A stretch of 64,000 nucleotides of DNA, taken from Syncephalis fuscata S228 (lineage: Eukaryota; Fungi; Zoopagomycota). This document shows, in pieces, positions 10,509 through 24,836 of this stretch. The notes beneath the pieces are model-generated. The model saw only the letters and a list, made by a program, of their open reading frames with translations. It was not told where the DNA came from and did no database searches. The DNA lies in contig JAHLTZ010000008.1 of NCBI GenBank assembly GCA_025786725.1, forward strand, positions 755,656-819,655, written 5' to 3'. Position numbers and translations under genes: made by a program. Position 1 is the first letter of the stretch. Every line of letters begins with the position of its first letter.

Positions 10509-11823
10509 TATATTATGTGCTTTTGCAAAGCCCCAACACCTACTTTTTAGAAAATTGTTTTTTTACACTATTGCTATTGCTATGGATTTTCAAACCTTGT
10601 TTAATTTCATATTCATTTATTAACTATTCATACTCGATGACTTACTTTTAATGTCGTTCATCTTTTATTGTTATTAATCTCATTTTGAGTATTTGAATTT
10701 CGATAGTAGCATTTTACACCGGCTATCATTGTTCATTCTTGTTATCATGCTCATGTTAATATTATTACGAGTTGACACAGCCTTTAAGGCCATGCAATTT
10801 GTTTAAATAAATATACTCTGCACAATAATTAATATTTTAGGTGCATTATAAAACAATTTGAAACTATGTACAAATTACATTGTCTCCCATAGCAGTGGTT
10901 CATCAGATTGCAATATCTAATGAAGATTTTTTAAACAAATTTAATTTTAATTGATTAGTGTTTATATATAATTTCAATAGAAAGAGGTATCACTACTGAT
11001 AGTAGAACAAATTCAACAAATAGAATATTGGCAAACATATTTAAAGCAATCGATTGCTATCGACAATAGTTGGTATACTTGCTATAAAAACGCAAGTAAA
11101 TGGTTTAATTGTAGCTATAGCAATGCATAATAAATGTATTTGCTTATTCCGGAAGTTCTAGAGTAATATCAGCATGCATTATACTGTCAAATATCCGTCT
11201 TTTCAAAAATAAATGCAAAAAGATTATAATTAGACACACGAGGAAAAGTGAATAATTATTGTTTTCACGCTTAAGCTTGACAAGATACTAATCACATTTG
11301 ACTTATACATCGAAATATAATGTATGTTTTTGACGGCCATTACATTGTGAATTCGTATTGTATTATAGCTTGGACACTCAAGTATGGCATGTAGCTTACG
11401 CTGTGATTTGATAGCCATTAGATTGACCAATATTTAAATTTACAGTTGTTATAAATTAGCCAGTATATATAAATTCAATTGAATCACTAAACTTATTAGT
11501 CATTTTTTTAAAAAAAACACGTAGTTTTTTTTAATAAAAAAAGTCGAATTTGCCACCAACAAAAATAGTCGCTGTTTTTCTGTGATGTGTGGCAAGATAA
11601 GTTTAAAAGAACAGTTATATATAAATATATAAATATAATATTAATATCTTATTAATAACACGTTTAATAATAACGACTTCTAGTGTTCAATGATTTTACT
11701 GTTATTTAACTTTACTACTATACTCATTATTTTTTATAATGATATTGTATATGCGTTCACTTGTGTGTGGTATTATAATTGTAGGAATGTGTAAAGTGTA
11801 GAAAGTTTTAGACCAACTTTAGT

Positions 11824-13030
11824 ATGCACCATGTCATTGAACATTACTTTGTGCAATCCAAATATCAATGCAGCCTTTTCACCAAAATTTCATCTAAATT
11901 ATTTATTACGGCGTTATACAAAATAATTGCTACTGAATTCATTACACGTATAGCAGCGGGGACATCAAACGGCGCAAGAAATCCCAGGACATCAAATGAC
12001 GATTATAAACTTAATTTATTTGTTATTGGAAACTTTAAACCGCTTATCGATGCAATGAATTCTAGGAAGCCATTTGATTTAGCTAAAATTGACTTTGAAT
12101 ATCGTATTACTATCAGTAGCAAAACTGATGTTAGGATTAAATTTCTTAAAAAATAAAAAAATTAATGGTGAAAGTGAATTTATATACGATTTCTGGTTAT
12201 AAACAATCTAACAATAAAGAAAACTTGGCGACATCACAATTGTTCCTCGCAATAAATCATCACATGATATGAGTGGCACATTGCGAAGAAAAAAGACTTA
12301 TACCGTCCTTCTAATTTGCTTCATGTTGTTAGCGTTGTTGGCGAAATCTTAGCTTTTGTTTTCATCATACACACCTTACTTTTCAGTCAGCGTCGCCTTT
12401 GACCTTGGGAAATTATCCAACGGTATTTTGTACGTAACAAAATACTTAGTACTATGCCGCAGTTCATGAGAGACATGAAATCTACCAGTCAACCCAAATC
12501 TAAGCAAGCTACAACTATAGATATAGAGTTTTATATGCGTTAAATCTACAGAAACAGAATACTTATCACGACCACCAAAATTATAGAATTATTACGTCGA
12601 CAAGTATCATTAAATGGCAGTATAGCACCATATGTACCACCAATGATAGTTGATGAGAAGCAGTAAAATTATTTGCCACACTTTTTTTTGAAGATGAAAT
12701 TCATGAACTTGAGACAATATTGACTACACAAACTATAAAAACACAAAATTACAAGGCACAAACGGAAACACAAATGAAAGCACAAGTAGAACAACTTGAA
12801 CTGGCATCACGACGACTTGCAGCATTTAAGGATAAATAATATCCAAACAACTCAATATTACGTTAAATGAACTAATAAGTAATGATAATAACAATGGTAA
12901 TAATGGTAGTAATTTATTAAATTATTTGATGGCCCAAATAATAATTTTTTAAAGCTCGTTTAACTAAGTTGGAAGCATTTCAACATCGATTGGGAGCATT
13001 TTACCTGGACCCTGATCTGTTTAAAAATAA
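11824..13030 (+). pseudogene. Decayed intronless ORF of unknown family with coiled-coil-like C-terminal part
   Basis: 110-aa ORF followed by stop- and frameshift-broken coding-like stretches (RKLGDITIVPRNKSSHDMSG; EDEIHELETILTTQ...KAQVEQLELASRRLAAFKDK). Confidence 0.4.
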
Positions 13031-13272
13031 TTAATTTATATATTTGAAGTTATTTTACTTTCACATTTTTTATTTACTCATTTCACTTCCTTTTTAAATA
13101 TTTTTAAATACAATTAAACATCTATTTATCACTATAAAATGTATAATATTACATCCAACATTAATTAATTCATGTGTAATTATCAATACAATAATGTAAC
13201 TAATTAATTATTTTTATTATTGCTTTAATATATATATATTGTTATTTATGATATTGATTGTTCAAAATGCCA

Positions 13273-13690
13273 TTTATTTAGTCAGATTGGCTATAAGGGA
13301 AATGACTGTTTAATAGACGACATTTATAATAGTTATATTAATCTTGAGTTTACATTACAAATATGCCCAAAATGCAATACTAGAATATTAGAAAATAGAA
13401 GAGACCATTCAGATGTAATAATCCATATTGTACGTAGATGCAACAACAACAAATGCGGAATGACATGGAAGCACAATCATATGGCTTCTATTAATATTCA
13501 ATCAATCTTTTTATACATGGCTAACAACAATAATAGTCGACCTCAATGTTTCAATGAAATTAAATAGTATGCTACATTCTTTAAATTAATAACAATGTTT
13601 TAATAAAGAGTAATATAACTATATTGTGCATAACAACGACATGACTCTGATTGGAACGAATTTTACTTTGGGAATTCAAGATGCAGAAGT
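13273..13690 (+). mobile_element. Fanzor/TnpB-like 3' remnant, copy 1 (Zn-finger + RuvC-III + conserved 3' non-coding tail)
   Basis: Translates TLQICPKCNTRILENRRDHSDVIIHIVRRCNNNKCGMTWKHNHMASINIQSIFLYMANNNNSRPQCF, fitting the TSxxCxxC...C-x4-C...WNRDxxAxxNI...RPxxF end of Fanzor1; homologous to 20014-20232 (+) and 23809-24245 (-). Confidence 0.8.
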
Positions 13691-13878
13691 CATGCTGTTA
13701 TGTATAACATAGTTATATTACTTTTTATTAAAATATTATACATGCTATGTATTATTCCATTTTTAGCTTTTAACTTTAGTACTTGTTAATTGAGTTAAAT
13801 AAAATGCTGCATCATATAAAATATTGTGTGTTATTTAACATTATTATACAATTTAATTAAATTTATTAATCAGTATAG

Positions 13879-14066
13879 TGTAGTGCGGTTATGTCGGTAC
13901 CTAAGCCCAGTACCTAGGCCTCTGGGATATCACCCATGGCGGTATGAGTTCCGTGGACGTTCGCTTCTATTGCTTGATTTGATAAACAAAATCCCTCTAC
14001 TCAGAAGGGCAAGCACTGTAGGTATTCTCTTACAGATGCTCGAATCTGCCTAACTAGAACGCTACG
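13879..14066. other. GC-rich 188-bp island with degenerate TGTAGTG...CGCTACG termini (solo LTR or ncRNA?)
   Basis: Sharp compositional contrast with flanks; imperfect inverted termini; short hairpins; no TSD seen. Confidence 0.3.
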
Positions 14067-14512
14067 TAACTTTTTAACACTTAATACAAAATAAAATACA
14101 ATTCAAAAGGCTTTTCCTTCTTTATTCAAAAGTGTGTTTTGAATCCTCTTATTATGCATCAAAGATACAGCAAACACAACACAGCAATGCCGAGCTACAT
14201 ATATCAATTTTTATTAATAAAAGAGCTGTAACCATACCGACAACGGTTATAGACAGCGTATAGCCAATATATAATAAAATGATAAACATTATAATGAATA
14301 CGCAATATTGAACGAGATTAGTAATGTTCAAGTTATTGAGCATATATGTATGTGCATGAGCAAAATAAGTCAATTTTATTAATAATAGTTCTAGAACAAA
14401 AATAAAAACAGTTTTGGATAAAGAAAGTCTAGACAAGTATAAGATGATATATAAAATGATAAATGTACGGTAAGAAAACATATAAACCGATGTTAAAGGT
14501 ACAGTGTGTATA

Positions 14513-14600
14513 CATCATCATGTTCAATAGATTGGACGTTATTAAATTTAGTCATTTGATCACCAAATCATAATAAATAACTAATAAATTGTTTAATGTA
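14513..14600 (+). repeat. Dispersed ~90-110 bp repeat, copy A
   Basis: CATCATCATGTTCAATAGATTGGA.GTTATTAAAT...CAAATCATA shared with ~19672-19785 and ~61152-61262. Confidence 0.7.
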
Positions 14601-15280
14601 AAAAGATTATCTTTATTTAATTAATAAATAATGTAATATATACAATTCATAAATTAAATGGTATTGTACATAAAAAGACTATGAATAAATTGAAATACCA
14701 ATGAGTGAATTGTTCAAGTGGTGAAATACAAGAAAGAATAAAAATCAATAGCATAAAAGCAAATATATTCATAAAACAATGTCATTAGTAAAATAAGAAG
14801 AATGGATATCAATGCATAAACAAATGTCATTATCATAGAACATAATATTACAGTTGACAACTCTAAACTTTTAAGCATTAGATTCAGTATATAAGCAACA
14901 GCTTTTTATTGTAAATGATGATTTAAACACAAATTAATCTAATCAGCTCGTCAACTATTTAAATCACTACAATCGATTGCGTAAAATAATTTACTACTCT
15001 GGGGGATTAAAGTAGATAGTTAACTAAAAACATTTATACATTACAATATCGATGTTAATTAACATTGAAATAATCAACCGTTTACATTTCGTGGCAGCTA
15101 TACTGCAAAGCGATTAACATGAAAAACGCATAGTACATTCTTTAAATCTGCCATTATACTGCAAATAGGTGCAAGTATAACAGCATGTTGTTGAAGAAAC
15201 AAAGGCTATTCGAGCAATGAAATAAAGCAAACATATCTTAGAGTGAGTAATTAAGTAATTGTGTTGTCAAACATAATCCT

Positions 15281-16748
15281 TTAAGGCTTCTGGCCATAAA
15301 AGTAATAAGCATGAACAAGCGTTCTATGCTCATCGCAGTCTTGCCATAGCTCGTCGAGAAGCTTGTCGTATTCCTCTTCCGATGAAACGACACCAATAAT
15401 AGCGGCCAATTTTTTCAGGCTACGTAATGCCTCATCGATATTGTTGCGCATCATACGACCAGAAATGCCAGCCCATTCGCCCACGGGAAATTCTACAATG
15501 CGCGCCTGAATCTCTATGTAGCCAGCTCGTTTCATTAGTTTGTCAAGACGACGAATAATGGAAAGATCGAGGCCACGATAAGCAAAACACTGCTCGACAA
15601 TCTTATTTACGCGATAGCCGATATCACCGACATTCTGAAAGCTGAAGTCGGTATCAGCCAGCTCGAGAAAACCGCCAGACTGTGTAATGCGAAACAGTTC
15701 GCCTACATGTGTTGGCCAGAAAGACGCGGGGATGGCACCACTCATCAAGCGTTGGTGAACAAAGTCGTAGCGATTCGAAGAGAATGACAATCCTAATATA
15801 GCAAATAAAAGGTAAATAATCGAGTATATATCATTTATATTAGTTGTATTTACCTTCCAGTATATTTCCCAATTCAAAAGCACAATTGTTTGGCATGTCT
15901 GTTTGCATAAAAATGTCGGCAATATCAACGCCAATTAGGCTGGCCTTTGGATAATCGCGCGCCACTTCCTTCATCCACATACCGGTGCCACAGCCCACGT
16001 CTAAAATCCGTTTTGGGTCGTTGACTGGCGCGAGGTATGTGCGACGAAGTACATAGCGAATAATGTTGTGCTGCGTATTGAGTCTATCCGTTTCATCAAG
16101 ATCTGTAGGCCATAAATAATTGGCCATATCTTCATTTAGCATACGGCGGCCATCCTGCCAAATGTATTTAGCTGGCACAATGCTTGTTGAGCTATTGGAA
16201 CCTGTTGTACTATGGTCATTGTTGTCGGATTTAATCAGCTTAGGATAGCAGTTTTCGTGGCCGAAAGAACCGCCTTCGCTATGACTACGCATCATACCAT
16301 TAGAAAAATCGTTGGCACTGCTGTAACTATTGCTATGCGTGTGCGGTCCCTTTACTTGACAAGGAACGTAGTTGGTATCAAGTAGTGCATGGGCGACACA
16401 ATCTGCACATCCACCGCAGTGCACGAAACCATTGGAAAACTTTTGAATATGTTCGCCAATATTTGCGGTCATTTGGTCCATACTACGATTATTGTGGACG
16501 TGTGCGGATGTTAAATCAACACTTAAACCAAGATGCGATTTATTGCGTCGTATTCCCGGAATACTTTGTAGAAATTTAGAACCTTTCTTGGTTCCAGGAT
16601 CAGCCGTAGGAAGTACTTCATGCTGCAGCTGTTGCATACACAATGGTGATGGGCGTCGATGCTGATGAGGCTGTCGACGGCAAGCATGCTTTCGCGCAGC
16701 TTTTGAATCGCTTGCCGTGCTTTTACGTGATGATGTAGTGTTGCCCAT
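15281..16748 (-). CDS. Class I SAM-dependent methyltransferase (LaeA-like), one intron ~15793-15852
   Basis: YLWPTDLDETDRLNTQH, RILDVGCGTGMWM, LIGVDIAD, YDFVHQRLM, FPVGEWAG. Confidence 0.93.
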
Positions 16749-19671
16749 GATGTTTGTCGCTCACTTATTAATCTTTTTTTCTCTTTCTCTTGTTTCTTCT
16801 ATTGCTACACAGCGGGGTCAGAAAAGCGGGGAAAGAACAAGTCGGATTGAACTGAGCCGGTAAATAAGCGGGCGATCAATAACACCAGAAATACGCAATT
16901 CAAGCCACAGTCGTACACAATAGGAAGCTGACGTCTAGCGCCGAACCGGTACTGTTCTTAGCAAAGATTGATATCACGTGCCAAACCAGCTGTATTACGC
17001 TGGAACGTAATTGTCTATAGGAATAAAAAGCAGTGCTGCTGTATAGTGAAGGATAATATTAAACGCCTAATCAAATGTTATACCAAAAATTTAGTATCTA
17101 TAGACTGTTTATTCAAGCGGACAAGAACGAGGTTGAAATATCAAAATCAAAAGTCGTTACTCGATAGGCAAGGCGTAATAATGCTCAACCAGTTTTGGTA
17201 CCAAAATAAATGTCAGCTGAATTGACCAGCATGCCGACTTTGGTTTATTGTATCACCATCACGTCCACCACAGACCATGAACGAAGAAATAAACCATCAA
17301 AAAGTACTTACCCGTGCGTATCCAAAAGAATATAGTCGGATATTATATAGCTATTGTTGCTATTTAAGTAGCGGCTACGTAAAATGAGAACTACAATCTA
17401 ACGCTTGATTGAGAGCACAGTATTGAGTCGTTATATAGTGTGAGAGGAGAGTAAACGGGAATAAACGAAAAATAATAGCGTTAAGGCGTGTAACGGTTAG
17501 GTTAGGTTCAATAAAAGGCGCCGAGAAAATGAAGTAAGAAGCAGGCCAAGGAGCGCAACGTTAAGCTTTGGCCGTAAATATCTGAAAAAAAGTTAGTAGG
17601 ATGATGGAGACGGAATAATACTGGTGTAACAAATATCTTGAAACGACGGCAAGTTTCGTGTAGGATATTTGTTTGGAGAATTAGGAAAATAGAAACGAGA
17701 AAGATAGAAAGAGTGGGAAATAGAGCGATAGATAGAAGGAGAGGAAGAAAAGAATACGCAGTATATCAACGTATAGTTGGACAAATAGTGCCAATGCTAT
17801 TGGTGCCGATAATAATAGCAGTACTAATCGTAATGGTAATAAAAATGGAATGATTGGCGATGGCAAAAGAAAACATCCGAATGCAAGACGGCGTCCGCGT
17901 GTCTATTTTAACCATGTTCTCGTCCTAAACAACTACAAAATGCCGCATTGTTCATTCATTGGACCCATTAGGGTAACGAGCTGATACTGATTACGAGGAT
18001 GGTCGGCGATGGCAGCAATAACAGAAATGGAAATGCATGAGCAGCAGCAGCATTTGTAGGCCATTTACTATTCAGCTGCACACAGCAGTGTAATGCATGT
18101 GCCGTCCATTCGTTGGTCTATTGCTTCTGACATCTTTGATTTCGTCGTTTGATTTGTACGCAAAAGGCGGAGGCACTAACGTGTGCCAATACGCGTTTCG
18201 TATGCATGCGGGCCAGTTTTGCTGAAAAAAATTCCTAGCATGTGCCCCTTGTGGCCTTGGGTGCGACTGTTTTCCCTCTTCACTTGCTTGCTTGCTACTA
18301 CTCACTTGCTAGTGTTTTACTGCTTTAGCCGCTAAATGATAATAAAATGACATGATAGGCCTAAAGGGTCGAGTTAAAAGCTTAGTTGGGACCGCTGAGT
18401 GTTTATTTGACGATTTCAGTGAAGTATACACGTGCACATTGCTTTCATGCAACCAAAAAAACGATGTCTTGCGCGATTGGTAAATTTTATTAGACACGCT
18501 TCACGGACGTGCGTGGTTGGTCTTACTCACCCGTGTTTACAGACCAACGACGTCATTGTCGTAACGGTGCATGAGCGTGCGCAGACAAATAGAAAATACT
18601 GGGTCTCAAAAAGCAGTATTTCATGACTACTTTGATCTTAGCAGAAGGCCTTGTTCGTAAGTTTTTCATTTAATAGTACATTAACCATAAACGACTTTTT
18701 ACAGAAAATATTTATATTATAGATAATGCTTATTTGTCCACAAGGGGCTCGTATACAATACATCGATTCTAATCGCGATAACATCGCTTAAAGCATTGTT
18801 TAGCAAGTGGTGTACTACCGATAAAGCAATAACAAACTCTTCTGAGGTTGCACGGTTATACAGTAACCCGTAATGGCAAAAACAGACGCTATAAATTTAT
18901 GTTAGTACTATTAATCTGCTTTAAAACTGTTGCTATCCTTTTTTCAATTTTTCATATTGATTAAACCTTTTGTTTTTGTATCGTATTTAAAACACTCTTG
19001 CTTGATGTTACACCAGTTGTACCAGTATTTAACTTATGGTCTAATAGAAATCACAATGTAATAAATACAATAACACATGGTTACTGTATTTTATTTCATA
19101 TTAATAATTACATGGGGCACAATGAGTGAAAGAAAAGATTTAAAATGTAAGTTTACAATTACATCTTTAGTATAACTGGTCAAATAAAACGAAAAACATA
19201 TGCTGAGTGCGCAACATCTACGTAAATTAAACGTTATTCAATAGTTATAGCACAATATAATGATAAACTAATAATAATAAACTGCTTATTGTAAAGCTAT
19301 GCCATGCTAATAAAGCAGCCACTAATAAAGCTATTGCTATAGTAGATATGGTTGTTTTTCACGCCTATTCTAGCCATTACTACGAAACTATTTTATTTTA
19401 GGTTTCCAACTTCAAGATGAAAACAAAAAATCTATAACTCAATAATAAAACGTCCATCGGTTTTTAACACTGAGAAGTGTCGTTTGTTGAAGCATCACTA
19501 TGTCAACTCCGTTTGAATTAGTTGAAGTTGAGCCAGTCTGTACTATTTTCAATATTCGATATTAGAGTTAATAGATGTTAAATAGCATTTTCATGTTACT
19601 TACAATAAAATATAATAAACAGATAAATGTTAATCCATATTATTGTTGCAGTAAAGTATTCAAAGCATTAT

Positions 19672-19785
19672 AATTTGATATTTAATGTCATTTACTATCC
19701 ATCATCATGTTCAATAGATTGGATGTTATTAAATAGCCACTTTAACCACAAATCATACTAAATGGCTAACAAATTTAATTAAATT
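19672..19785 (+). repeat. Dispersed ~90-110 bp repeat, copy B
   Basis: Homologous to 14513-14600 and 61152-61262. Confidence 0.7.
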
Positions 19786-20013
19786 GTATAATAATGTTAA
19801 ATGATACACTATTTTATACAATAATGCAGTTTATTTAATTCAATTAGCAAGTACTAAATTAAAAGTTAAAAACGAAATGCTACATAGCATGTATATATTA
19901 GTGCAACAACACTAGCACAATCAAATAAAACAATTGACTAAATAATTGCTAATATCATTACTAAAATAGCTAATGTGGTTGTAATTGTAGTAAATGTAGC
20001 TCATTGTAATATG

Positions 20014-20232
20014 TTAATATTTAGTCAATTTTTCTACACATGACGAACAATAACAATCAACCTCAAATGTTCCAAAGAAATCAAACAGTATGTTACATTA
20101 TTTATTTAAATTAATTTATTAATAATATTTTAATAGAAAGTAATATAATTATGTTGTGCATAACAATGGCATGACTTCAATTGAAATAAAACTTTGCTTT
20201 GGGGACTCAAAATAGGCGGCGCAAAGTAAAAT
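20014..20232 (+). mobile_element. Fanzor/TnpB-like 3' remnant, copy 2 (last codons + non-coding tail)
   Basis: NI*SIFLHMTNNNNQPQMFQRNQ followed by TGTTGTGCATAACAATGGCATGACT...ACTTTGCTTTGGGGAC...GCAAAGTAAAAT. Confidence 0.75.
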
Positions 20233-20316
20233 TCATTCACTATCATTATGATGATGGTTAAAAATAATAAACTTGTTTGTCGCCTATTTCAATAACTAAC
20301 CATAGTATTAGCCACC

Positions 20317-22307
20317 ATGACCACTACAAAGCCTATTGAACGACAGAATAAGCTGCTTTTTATACTGATTGACGGCGTCGGCGACGTGTCGGTCTCTTCT
20401 TTGGCGGGAAAAACACCTTTGCAAGCGGCACATTTACCTCACTTGGACCGAATTGCGCGTATGTACAACTATTTATAAAGCATAAGTAACATAATTATGA
20501 ACACGTAATATCGTTGCTAGTTAAAGGTGTCAACGGCTTGCTTGATCCAGTAGAGCCAGGACTGGCGTGCGGATCGGATACAGCTCATCTATCTTTGTTC
20601 GGCTACAATCCAAGGCAGTAAGTTTTATGTTAATAATACCGTTTATTTATAAATATTAAAAATCCTACTAATATATATTGGATATTGGTAGATATTACCG
20701 CGGACGAGGAGCATTTGAATCGATGGGTGCTGGTCTTTCAATGATACCAGGCGATATTGCTTTCAAGGTTAGTAGACCAACTTTTATATTGGTTTTGTGT
20801 AGCGTCGATTCATACTAGGATTAGTCGAATTTTGCTACTCTAGACCGTGCATCCGGCATTGTTCTAAAACGTAGAGCGGATCGTAATTTTGAAGGCCTTG
20901 GACCACAATTATGTGCCGATTTAAACGGTCTGTAAGTACTTTGACTAGACGATAAACAATCATTACTATTATCATTGTTATACTAAATGTATCATTTAAT
21001 AGCAAACTACCATCATTTCCTAACCATAGTGTTGCTGTTAAATATGCAACGGAACATAGGTAAGTGAATTTATTACTTATTGACCTATTACAAATCTAAG
21101 TGTTTTATCAATTAGATGTGGCGTTCGTGTTAGAGGTCCAGGTCTAACCGATATGATTACAGGTACAGATCCATTAAAAGACAAGTCAGTTACTTTAAAT
21201 AATAATATAATAATACTAATTAATTTAATAGTCTTCCACTTGTCAAGTGTACACCGACTGATGGTAGTGAAGAGGCCGAACTAACAAGCAAAGTAGGCTA
21301 ATTATAGCTGATAATGTAGTTTATATTAATAATATAGCAATGGGTGGCTGTTTAGCTTGTCAATGAGCTTTCCGACTGTATTTATAACATACTTGTCAAT
21401 CATCCAATTAATGAGCAACGTGTAAAAGCGGGCAAATCTTTGACCAATTGCGTTTTACTACGTGGATGTGGGTCTCGTATCAAGGTAATAGTTGATATGT
21501 TATAGAATTAATACTGAATAATGATATATAGATGCCTACAGTAGAAGAAATACATGGGTTAAAATCATTTATGGTTGCGCCAACATGTATTATCGCCGGT
21601 TTAGGAGAAACCATTGGTATGGGTAAGTAAAGTATTGTGTTGCAAGTAACCACATTATAAACAATTGTATAGATATTTGTGTGGTTCCGGGTGCTACTGG
21701 CGATTACTTTACCAATATTCTGGCTAAAGGAGAGGCGGTCACTGATAAATTATTGCATAGTGGTAAATTATTAGTAAATGGTGATGGTAATTGTAATTAA
21801 TTGTGAATATTAGAATCGCCGTATAATTTTGCCTTTTTACACATTAAAGCAGTTGATGATGCGGGACATGATAAAAATATTGAATACAAAGCAAGTAAAT
21901 TGTAATGAATTTTAAATTGTATCATCTAATATTTTACAGATCCGATTCTTACAAGAAATTGATCAAATGATCGGTAAAGTTGTGGAGAAACTAGAGGATT
22001 ATACAAAAGCATCGAGTGAACATAAGGTAGATATTGGCTTGTTTGCTTATTGGTCTAGCTATTTATTTAATATTTAATTGAATAGGTTACGCTCTGTGTG
22101 ACGGGTGATCATTCAACGCCCGTGCTCTATGGCGATCATAGTTGTGAACCCGTTCCATTTACTGCATTACGCGTCGATCAGATGCCATTACCGCCAGACA
22201 ATGTCGCAACATTCGATGAAATGGCTGCAGCCCACGGTGGGCTGGGTCGTTTTAGTGGACAAGATGTCATGTCGTTACTGAAAACGCTCATGACCATGTC
22301 AAATTAG
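20317..22307 (+). CDS. Cofactor-independent phosphoglycerate mutase, ApgM/archaeal-type (alkaline phosphatase superfamily), ~11 introns
   Basis: [86 protein letters not shown]. Confidence 0.92.
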
Positions 22308-22327
22308 TATTATTGATAGTAGCGTAG

Positions 22328-23302
22328 CTATAGCTTTTTTGTTGGTTGAAATAATGCAAGGAAGTCATCTTCAGAATAAACCTGGCCAAAATGTTGTGCT
22401 GTGGTATTGCGCATATCAATATAAGCATCAAGATTTGTCACACCTAGTGTAAATAGAAAATATGATAGTTAATTGGCACGTAGATTGATTATAATTAGTT
22501 AAACACTTACGTTCAGAATATTCATTACTGATCAGTGGTGGATAATCGGGCGGTGGAGCTAGCCATGCTTTTGTTACTTTATCAATCTACAACAGCTTGT
22601 CATCAATTTGGTCTTCAGTCGCATTAAAATTCACCAATTACCATGTGAGATCGATCAGATGAAAAGTGCTTAACATAATCAACTGCAGGCACAACTCGGA
22701 ACTGCCTTTTTATTTGTTGTTAGTGAGTTCATGAGTTGTAAATAATAAAATTAATCCTTACCGCTGATAAATATTTAATAATTGCATGTTTGGTTTGAAC
22801 GCCGCATCAACATACTTATGAAATAAGCAAGGAAAAGGCAGTAGTGCATCGAAATCGTAAACTATACAGCTAGTTTGATAGCATTTTAGTTGATATACAA
22901 ATCTATTATTATTATTATTAATCCATTTACCTGCTTGCTGTCTGGTTAATCAATATAACATGATAGTCCTAGATATTAAATTATTAAATATCAATATACT
23001 TTAACCGTATCAGTTTTCGTAGCAATCATCATTACCCATATCACAAGTGTACTATCATCTCTAGAAGCCGACTGGGCCCATAGCGGCACCTACAACGCAA
23101 GAAAATAAGTATGGGACGGAATTTACAGCTATTGCAAGTCATACAAGCACTAAGCACTTACCGCGCGACGCTCATTAGAAATAAAAACAACTAGCGCATT
23201 GCTGGTCGGGTCAACAGCAAGTAATTGCTTTGATAAAAGATAAATATTTTCTTCGCAGTATTGCTTTGTATATTGAGTTTCACTTCGAGTCAATATTGTC
23301 AT
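22328..23302 (-). CDS. NTAQ1: Protein N-terminal glutamine amidohydrolase (WDYHV1/NTAQ1), multi-exon
   Basis: YTKQYCEENIY, VVFISNERR, VPLWAQ, DYHVI, YDFDALLPFP, HFSSDRSHM, APPPDYP. Confidence 0.92.
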
Positions 23303-23808
23303 TGTAATGTGTTGTGTGTTAATGATTGTGAGAAGAAAAGGATATTTTATTTAGTCAATGAGATTGATAATTACGTGCTATGTTGTTAATAAAGTCAGCG
23401 TGATCATTGATGTGTTTAATAACGGTCGTGCTGATATGTGATTTTCAACCTATGCTCATTTTAATGATGTACACGACATTGTTTTTATGGTTTTGCACAC
23501 TGAAATGATATATTCTATTATTCAGTTATGCATAACGTATACGTATTTAAATAAACTGTACATGGAAAGTATCAGAAATGCGAGTGATGCCATCATCGGC
23601 GCACTGTTTACTATCAATTTGATACTGTTCGTATTGTATTATCGGCCGATTATAGCGATTTAATCAAATTTAGCCAATATTTTATTTCAAACTATAATTT
23701 AATGGCTATATTAGATACAATTGACCATGCAGCGATTAAACTTTCTACACTTATACAGATGATCAGGAAAACTACACTGATTATTAAATATACAAATGTC
23801 TTGGTTGC

Positions 23809-24245
23809 ATTTTACTTTGCTCCTACATCTGTCCCCAAAGCACAATTCGTTTCGATCAGAGTCATGCCGTTATTATGCACAACATAGTTATATTACTTCC
23901 TATTAAAATACTGTTAATAAACTGATTTAAATGAAGAATGTAACATACTATTTGATTTCATTGAAACATTTAAGGCCGATTATTATTGCTGTTGGCTATG
24001 TGTAGAAAGATTGATCGAATATTAATAGAAGCCATATGATTGCAATTTCATGTCATTCCGCATTTGTTGTTGTTACATTTATGTACAGTGTGGATTATTG
24101 CATCTGAATGGTCTATTCTATTTGCTATTCTTCTATTATTACATTTTGGATATCTTTGTGCTGTAAAATCAAGATTGCTATAATTAGTATAAAAAGTAGT
24201 TTATTAAACAGCCACTTTTCCTATAACCAATCTGACTAAATAAAA
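23809..24245 (-). mobile_element. Fanzor/TnpB-like 3' remnant, copy 3
   Basis: Reverse complement aligns end to end with 13273-13690 (PKC...HTVHKCNNNKCGMT*NCNHMASINIRSIFLH...NNRP) and ends GCTTTGGGGAC...GCAAAGTAAAAT like copy 2. Confidence 0.8.
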
Positions 24246-24836
24246 AAGTCAAATTACAATAGCCCCAGTGCCTTAAAAAGAAGTAAATTTGTTTTGATAT
24301 TAATACAAAACGGGCTACGAACTAATCTTCAAAACTATCACGGTTACACATATAGATTTAGTTGTCAATTGAAGCAAATAGAATATTCTAATGGTGCGTT
24401 ATTCTACTATTTTAGTTGAGCTATCATGCTGTGTTGTATTTAGCAGCAATATAAAATTGAAAATAATAATACCAGAATTCACACATGCTATTTAGATTTC
24501 CATAGAAGGACATAGTTAACGACGATATATATTCAAAATAGGTAATAGTCATGCTTTAGGCCATACTATTTTAGTCGAATAATCATGTCACATTACAATC
24601 AGTAGTCATTGAGGTATAAAAATAAACAAACTTGATGTTTCAAGTGTGCTATTTTGTATTCTACACTAATGAGCTTGACACATAATTTTGTATCAATGCC
24701 TGTTGAGTTCCAATCGGCTTGTGCCTAAATGATTATAAATTCTACAATAGTTAGTGTTTTTCTTCAAATTAGCATACAACTTAGCGTTTCAAATTTTACT
24801 TAGAAAAAATATATAGACAAAAATTCTGTTTTCAGT

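Follow-up and report, generated by a model that had tools for sequence, protein, structure and literature searches.

Three repeats in the Syncephalis fuscata genome are dead copies of a miniature transposon that retains the 3' end of a Fanzor1 gene

Why does a 64,000-nt stretch of the genome of Syncephalis fuscata S228 (the window, in what follows) hold three related repeats that read like the end of Fanzor, the eukaryotic TnpB-like RNA-guided nuclease? An earlier, sequence-only reading took them for members of an internally deleted, nonautonomous family with a unit of about 430 bp, which implied a full-length Fanzor elsewhere in the genome or in its ancestry. It proposed counting copies genome-wide, defining their ends as well as the target site duplications (TSDs), and searching for a transposase, and it named two outcomes that would speak against it: a peptide from a non-Fanzor zinc finger family, and copies without common ends and without a Fanzor-like parent. 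Neither outcome came about. We find that all three repeats belong to a miniature transposon that retains the 3' end of a Fanzor1 gene, that they are dead copies of it, and that they are not a working nuclease. A repeat search within the window, which is AT rich (GC content of 29 to 48%), recovered all three at the expected places as pairwise matches of 82 to 85% identity: positions 13323 to 13546 and 23970 to 24193 form a complementary pair of 224 nt (84%), positions 20048 to 20186 match 23850 to 23988 (85%), and positions 13581 to 13656 match 20111 to 20186 (82%).

The repeats belong to a large family with defined ends. A 428-bp query against the 29.4-Mb genome gave 634 first-look candidates and 40 scored matches at 81 to 95% identity, well in excess of chance (the genome searches score the best candidates only, which makes the copy counts bounds). 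When the search was extended into the flanks, most copies aligned from approximately positions 13034 to 13064 to positions 13672 to 13692 of the first window repeat (copy 1), and in an alignment of 21 copies (copy 1 plus 20 others), similarity dropped sharply outside a unit of ~650 bp. The unit is bounded by terminal inverted repeats (TIRs) of ~30 bp with the core C-T-G-T-A-C-T-T-T-G-A-C; allowing up to 3 mismatches, the TIR motif had 302 matches genome-wide, compared to 0 for a reversed control. Outside the TIRs, the sequence is unrelated between copies. The TSDs are 8 bp long and perfect (8/8) at loci L023 and L014, where an extension to 9 bp fails. At L025/L026, the 8 bp are also perfect, with the identity running by chance into the element end, and the match is 7/8 at L012 and L046 and 6/8 at L044, at L051, and in copy 3. 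The copies thus have common ends, with TIRs and 8-bp TSDs.

With these ends, the limits of the window copies change. Copy 1, of the ~650-bp form, runs from 13046 to 13692 on the plus strand (placed by the alignment with 20 genomic copies and by end mapping), which is 227 bp further left than previously thought, and differs from the family consensus by 11.3%. In its left TIR, which begins at 13046, 6 bp are deleted internally, and its right TIR is cut after 13692. Between the left TIR and the coding remnant lies an AT-rich, noncoding left module (13071 to 13348, plus strand) that is not found in the longer subfamilies. Even in the consensus, the module has no reading frame, every frame being full of stops; genome-wide, it had 371 first-look candidates compared to 634 for the right module, with 85 to 88% identity. 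The Fanzor1-derived coding remnant (13349 to 13567, plus strand) was delimited by translation and by the A2 and PF07282 profiles described below and comprises the part after RuvC-II, a C4 zinc ribbon, a degenerate RuvC-III, the C-terminal tail, and the stop. From the stop codon to the right end, a tail (13568 to 13692, plus strand, by family alignment) includes the truncated right TIR at ~13677 to 13692.

The two other copies are shorter. Copy 2 is a deletion derivative of ~243 bp at ~19996 to 20238 on the plus strand, where family queries match positions 20014 to 20235 at 81 to 87%. From left to right, it has a degenerate TIR followed by ~25 bp of left sequence and then, with the zinc finger missing, the last ~17 codons, the tail, and the right TIR. 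Copy 3 (23803 to 24266, minus strand, by family queries and end reading) is a 464-bp derivative with both TIRs. It lost the left module between two 12-nt direct repeats (one mismatch) and therefore seems to have the same left boundary as copy 1; the boundary near 13273, which the sequence-only reading had taken as common to both copies, is an internal-deletion junction in copy 3 and not an element end. Its frame is broken, with the W codon changed to a stop and the first zinc cysteine lost. In element orientation, the left TSD of copy 3 reads aaggcact (24267 to 24274, minus strand) and the right one, by sequence reading, aagacatt (23795 to 23802, minus strand), a 6/8 match in which both mismatches are transitions. 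Of the earlier description, the internal deletion and the lack of autonomy stand, while the unit is ~650 bp, the form of ~430 to 460 bp is secondary, and the copies, with their TIRs and TSDs, are cut-and-paste derivatives rather than pieces of a gene alone.

The coding remnant derives from Fanzor1. The peptide that had been quoted for copy 1 is an exact reading in frame 13274, in which CxxC...CxxxxC is followed by W-K-H-N-H-M-A-S-I-N-I. On copy 1 alone, the Pfam profile PF07282 (Cas12f1-like TNB) stayed below its threshold (21.4 bits, cut-off of 26.3, E value of 2.9e-4); genome-wide, it matched 87 places, 26 of them above the cut-off. A profile built from an alignment of 17 open frames of genomic copies (A1) had as its best match among solved structures the Fanzor1 of G. 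theta, at its extreme C terminus (E value of 8.6e-4), followed by Cas12m, TnpB, and Cas12f. In a library of 1.84 billion proteins, A1 matched 673 proteins at an E value of ≤1e-3, many of them 550 to 1040 aa long and matched at the C-terminal end.

A second profile (A2) was built from 12 full-length library relatives, in which the D, the E, the four C, and the R-D residues are invariant. A2 aligned over nearly the whole length of S. punctatus Fanzor1 (SpuFz1; E value of 1.7e-50), matched P. parasitica Fanzor1 (PpFz1; 1.2e-40) and G. theta Fanzor1 (GtFz1; 1.8e-39), and found copy 1 at C350:769004-769210 (window positions 13349 to 13555) with an E value of 2.7e-18 over profile positions 558 to 628. 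The A1 and A2 matches identify the remnant as the piece of a Fanzor1 from RuvC-II to the C terminus, and it is by its profile matches that copy 1 is assigned to the Fanzor1 C-terminal segment rather than to another zinc finger family. Two other searches were negative: phmmer with a full-length relative (P0004) had no match in the PDB, so that profile A2 was needed, and PF01385 (OrfB_IS605) had no match in the genome, which is uninformative because the Fanzor RuvC is divergent.

In the structures of SpuFz1 (8gkh), PpFz1 (9cf0), and GtFz1 (9cer), the C-terminal RuvC-II, TNB zinc ribbon, and RuvC-III align with the remnant, which differs from them in having no REC, WED, or RuvC-I and in the replacement of the catalytic E and D. 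The RuvC-I aspartate and the whole WED/REC half are absent from all three window copies, upstream of whose remnants there is only the noncoding module or the TIR. Translation bears out that the canonical RuvC-II motif is missing from copies 1 and 3; its glutamate, in D-E-x-x-T-S, is absent from these copies and from the 650-bp consensus and is retained in the sister subfamilies L040, L041, and L033. The C4 zinc ribbon is kept in copy 1, has lost its first cysteine in copy 3, and is gone from copy 2 with its region. At RuvC-III, W-N-R-D has been replaced by W-K-H-N in copy 1, by stop-N-C-N in copy 3, and by W-N-C-N in the family consensus, and persists in only a few copies (e.g., L027 and L038). 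Judged from these residues, a remnant without REC, WED, and RuvC-I and with both the catalytic E and D replaced cannot act as a nuclease. None of 164 library proteins (150 listed matches and 14 cluster members) was more than 67.5% identical to the remnant loci, which are therefore not annotated proteins of this genome.

How did a Fanzor1 fragment come to lie between TIRs? The family comprises subfamilies of 243, 464, ~650, and 726 to 865 bp with common ends and different interiors. The relatives of 726 to 865 bp (L040 and L039) have kept D-E-Y-x-T-S together with up to ~35 more upstream codons, which align with Mucorales Fanzor1. Given these nested lengths with common ends, the family is a nested deletion series. 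Compared to the 650-bp form, loci L040, L044, and L046 have the first ~45 bp in common, and homology resumes at 13349/13350, at the T-x-Q-I-C codons; since homology with both the subfamilies and Fanzor begins there, the founding deletion took everything through the RuvC-II glutamate. With lengths of 0.24 to 0.87 kb, a high copy number, TIRs, a fixed-length TSD, and no intact coding capacity, the units have the properties of miniature inverted-repeat transposable elements (MITEs). Like MITEs in general, they are shorter than 1 kb, noncoding, bounded by TIRs, flanked by TSDs, present in many copies, and derived by internal deletion; unlike them, they have an interior made of a recognizable piece of an RNA-guided nuclease and a presumed guide RNA region.

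Very probably, then, all three are dead members of a nonautonomous, MITE-like cut-and-paste family that arose by internal deletion from a TIR-bounded transposon in which a Fanzor1 gene lay at the right end. The founder of ~650 bp would have kept the left TIR, the ~280-bp noncoding module, the last ~70 Fanzor1 codons (beginning just past the RuvC-II glutamate and including the zinc ribbon and RuvC-III), and a ~150-bp tail with the right TIR. A transposase acting in trans would have amplified it to several hundred copies, each with an 8-bp TSD, and later deletions at short direct repeats would have yielded still shorter forms, among them copies 3 and 2. The homology, the ends, the TSDs, the copy number, and the neutral decay are shown by the data, and both the mobilization in trans and the complete Fanzor1 element as the parent are what we infer from these remains.

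Several observations weigh against this origin. The copy numbers are bounds, copy 1 lacks a complete right end, no TSD is recognizable at the ends of copy 2, and the full-length parent was not seen in the genome searches. With P0004, the best 77 of 420 candidates were scored, and all lay within residues 428 to 568; with A2, the best 70 of 680 first-look candidates all fell within positions 495 to 632 of the 637 in the profile. The full-length Fanzor implied by the sequence-only reading is retained as a presumed ancestor, none having been found among matches that are C-terminal in 70 of 70 cases. The mobilizing transposase was likewise not identified in genome domain searches, and neither hAT nor MULE fits as its superfamily in every respect. 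The 8-bp TSD is of the hAT type, and Fanzors are more often associated with hAT than with any other superfamily (PMC10530073), but the TIRs start with G-G-A-G-C or G-G-T-T-G and not with the hAT Y-A-R-N-G. The hAT dimerization domain (PF05699) had no match in the genome in a search without a positive control. The MULE transposase domain (PF10551) had 15 genome matches, four of them in open frames of 204 to 243 aa, and none adjoins a listed TIR match with 0 to 1 mismatches. MULE TSDs are usually 9 to 11 bp, some sources allowing 8 to 9 bp, and the TSDs here, at 8 bp, do not have the length expected for MULE/MuDR. In the MuDr-like Fanzor elements of Mucorales, the TSDs are 9 bp long and the TIRs are different (PMC3627910).

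Some loci may nevertheless represent longer members or relatives of the family. A profile of the N-terminal part of the Fanzor1 relatives only (A3) found a single locus in the genome, C317:733801-734291 on the minus strand, which matched in the RuvC-I region in two adjacent frames (E values of 3.4e-8 and 1.6e-7, open stretches of 131 and 235 aa) and is a candidate for a longer or complete Fanzor gene. We also observed four inward-facing TIR pairs 6.5 to 11.6 kb apart (C339:593246-599722, C77:2865-12444, C328:389907-399676, and C22:4299-15887), each with the same sequence variant in both TIRs, as candidate long or autonomous family members. The MULE domains in the open frames of 204 to 243 aa (C90:23312-23599, C351:15327-15614, C336:21728-22015, and C339:307853-308140) may belong to autonomous elements.

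Fanzor1 has been found inside TIR- and TSD-bearing cut-and-paste elements without a transposase of their own in Mucorales (ROr-4 and PBl-3 as well as MCi-4; PMC3627910). The Syncephalis units resemble such Fanzor1-bearing transposons (Bao and Jurka 2013, PMC3627910; Jiang et al. 2023, PMC10530073) in holding Fanzor1 sequence within a transposase-less TIR/TSD element. The Mucorales elements, however, are 4.5 to 5.2 kb long, encode a whole Fanzor1 of 1165 to 1245 aa, have 9-bp TSDs and G-G/A-A-T-A-A TIRs, and occur in 6 to 9 copies, whereas the Syncephalis units are 0.24 to 0.87 kb long, hold the last ~70 to 130 codons, have 8-bp TSDs and another TIR, and occur in hundreds of copies.

Could the retained 3' end have been kept for a reason? 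Short stand-alone or nonautonomous derivatives of bacterial IS200/IS605-TnpB elements retain the transposon end that encodes the guide RNA, and these elements move by single-strand "peel and paste," without TIRs or TSDs. The carrier in Syncephalis differs in being a eukaryotic TIR element, and its guide RNA is putative. Published guide RNAs of Fanzors reach past the downstream end of the open reading frame (ORF) and overlap with the right TIR (PMC10530073), and the ~150-nt tail, with a fitting size and place, occupies the position from which Fanzor omegaRNA scaffolds are encoded. As an addition to the MITE explanation, the 3' end and tail might have been retained as an omegaRNA source: a Fanzor1 acting in trans, and now lost or rare, would have cut empty sites so that the miniatures were kept or copied. 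In keeping with this idea, retention is asymmetric. In every derivative, the right end is kept over ~205 bp or more and the left end over as little as ~30 to 45 bp; across subfamilies, at least ~205 to 340 bp of the right end was kept, compared to ~45 bp of common left sequence. The right module also had more first-look candidates than the left (given above), and a second remnant family (L033 type), whose protein is ~35% identical, ends in the same terminal sequence. The tail consensus folds into three hairpins with a z score of -3.6, and better-preserved copies reach -2.0 to -2.4.

The three window copies, on the other hand, fold no better than shuffled sequences (z scores of -0.2 to -0.6; -0.19 for copy 1), and part of the terminal hairpin is formed by the TIR. 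RNAalifold gave a covariation term of -0.42, with double changes at only 3 pairs and in single sequences, and Rfam had no match in 12.5 kb at permissive thresholds, apart from two chance-level ones. A look for sequencing runs turned up two DNA runs, with a word share of 0.06, and no RNA run. Transposase binding to subterminal repeats would account for the asymmetry equally well. A guide RNA role in the upkeep or spread of the family is unlikely.

It is far less probable that three Fanzor genes decayed on site and that only their best-conserved 3' ends can still be recognized. The catalytic C terminus is indeed the most conserved part of Fanzor and TnpB proteins (Bao and Jurka 2013, PMC3627910) and would be the last to fade. 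The remnant, however, is preceded by a TIR at a distance of 300 bp (30 bp in copy 3), and the unit is flanked by TSDs. The 280 bp upstream of the remnant are themselves a repeat, found in hundreds of places at 85 to 88% identity. Decay in place is contradicted by the common ends, past which the copies are unrelated.

The copies differ from the consensus by 8.6 to 12.7%, with difference rates of 8.0, 9.7, and 5.9% at codon positions 1, 2, and 3, respectively. Among codons with a single change, synonymous changes made up 19.6% (25.2% expected from the observed spectrum) and stops 5.0% (5.5% expected). This pattern shows no sign of protein-level selection: the copies decay neutrally, and none codes for an active nuclease. 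That the Fanzor C terminus was domesticated into a family of small (~110 aa), expressed zinc-ribbon proteins is, despite the many copies with open frames of 100 to 131 aa, barely credible, as there is no synonymous excess and third codon positions are the least changed, the zinc cysteines and the RD motif are gone from many copies, the frame has no conserved start codon, and 26 of 70 matches are free of stops, about what a rough, uncomputed estimate gives for neutral decay at ~10% divergence.

The main family (family A) is not the only one of its kind. At least four more, mutually divergent families of Fanzor C-terminal remnants occur in the genome: family B (L032, L033, L042, and L043), family C (L047 and L057), family D (L050), and family E (L055). 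Family B has a 131-aa open frame in which both the D-E and the R-D motif are intact, and at L033, the best-preserved remnant outside the main family, there were no upstream Fanzor exons within 3.5 kb. Given the terminal sequence common to the main and L033-type families, one transposase probably moved both. We also observed that the 10-nt motif T-G-A-A-A-T-C-A-A-A at the Fanzor stop codon is common to families A and B, whose proteins are ~35% identical (e.g., at window positions 13550 to 13565 and in the L033 tail); in family A, the stop codon is often mutated and the frame extended.

Where the Fanzor1 sequences came from is a further question. Syncephalis is a mycoparasitic genus in the Zoopagomycota, a fungal phylum other than that of the Mucorales, which include its hosts. 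Two window ORFs agree with the placement in Syncephalis: the product of one has 81% identity to a S. plumigaleata protein and 79% to a S. pseudoplumigaleata one, and the only named matches of a second one are in S. fuscata, the full-length ones at ~59 to 61% identity. For the remnants, names were looked up for 28 of the 150 listed matches and a further set of relatives. The named relatives among these (~20 clusters) are all from Mucoromycota, and most are from Mucorales; the genera represented are Thamnidium, Cunninghamella, Rhizomucor, Parasitella, Rhizopus, Blakeslea, Mucor, Helicostylum, Umbelopsis, Benjaminiella, Radiomyces, Hesseltinella, and Absidia. In a tree of 109 columns, three Syncephalis remnant families fell in three Mucorales clades, and 0 bootstrap trees united them.

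The idea of a Fanzor transposon crossing between Mucorales and mycoparasites has been raised for Parasitella (Xu et al. 2024, PMC11423790). For Syncephalis, we put forward only tentatively, and with more doubt than confidence, that Fanzor1 transposons moved horizontally between this fungus and its Mucorales hosts two or more times and then burst as guide RNA-side miniatures. Identities to the Mucoromycota relatives are only 45 to 55%, and the tree is a short one made from pseudogene sequences; ancient shared lineages would fit it equally well, the data being too short and decayed to decide. The terminal sequence common to families A and B points to diversification within this genome. As a separate observation, the Fanzor1 C termini of P0199 (Mucor circinelloides) and P0206 (Umbelopsis isabellina) are close to each other (branches of 0.1 to 0.2, support of 98/93), which hints at transfer or contamination among Mucoromycota.

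Directly to the right of copy 1, part of the tail is present a second time in inverted orientation (13693 to 13739, minus strand) and forms a fold-back, joined to copy 1 inside the right TIR at a 5-nt microhomology. The inverted repeat pairs 13594 to 13635 with 13696 to 13737 (88%), and family queries match 13686 to 13737 on the opposite strand. A stray fragment of 110 bp (14905 to 15014, plus strand; blastn identity of 83.6% over 110 bp) resembles the right part of a longer subfamily of the L046 type. On contig C47, locus L015 has the same structure as copy 3, of which it is a paralogous duplicate. Window positions 11700 to 24300 are duplicated on C47 (L002, L015, and L062) at 95 to 97% identity, including copies 1 and 3 ~11 kb apart; the duplicate reflects either a segmental duplication or a second haplotype left uncollapsed, and both MITE insertions are older than it.

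Other dispersed repeats of 82 to 91% identity lie at 13732 to 13882, 19767 to 19899 (inverted), and 19600 to 19718 and recur beside Fanzor-derived MITEs at L007, L028, L039, L049, and L058 and at L004, L006, L064, and L068. The order of copy, inverted partial copy, and 150-bp segment that follows copy 1 is found again at other loci. Upstream of copy 1 and outside the MITE, positions 11700 to 13030, including the ORF at 11824 to 12156, have a 75% paralogue at C317:292716-293852.

The three repeats represent ordinary transposon decay and offer no usable nuclease. In the literature searched, no paper named Fanzor together with zoopagomycetes, and the family extends the taxonomic range in that Fanzor1-derived elements are abundant in a zoopagomycete. 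For annotation, the several hundred "Cas12f1-like TNB" domain matches in this genome are MITE debris and not genes. Two testable leads follow: whether miniature derivatives keep the guide RNA module for a reason and whether Fanzor transposons crossed between Mucorales and their mycoparasites.

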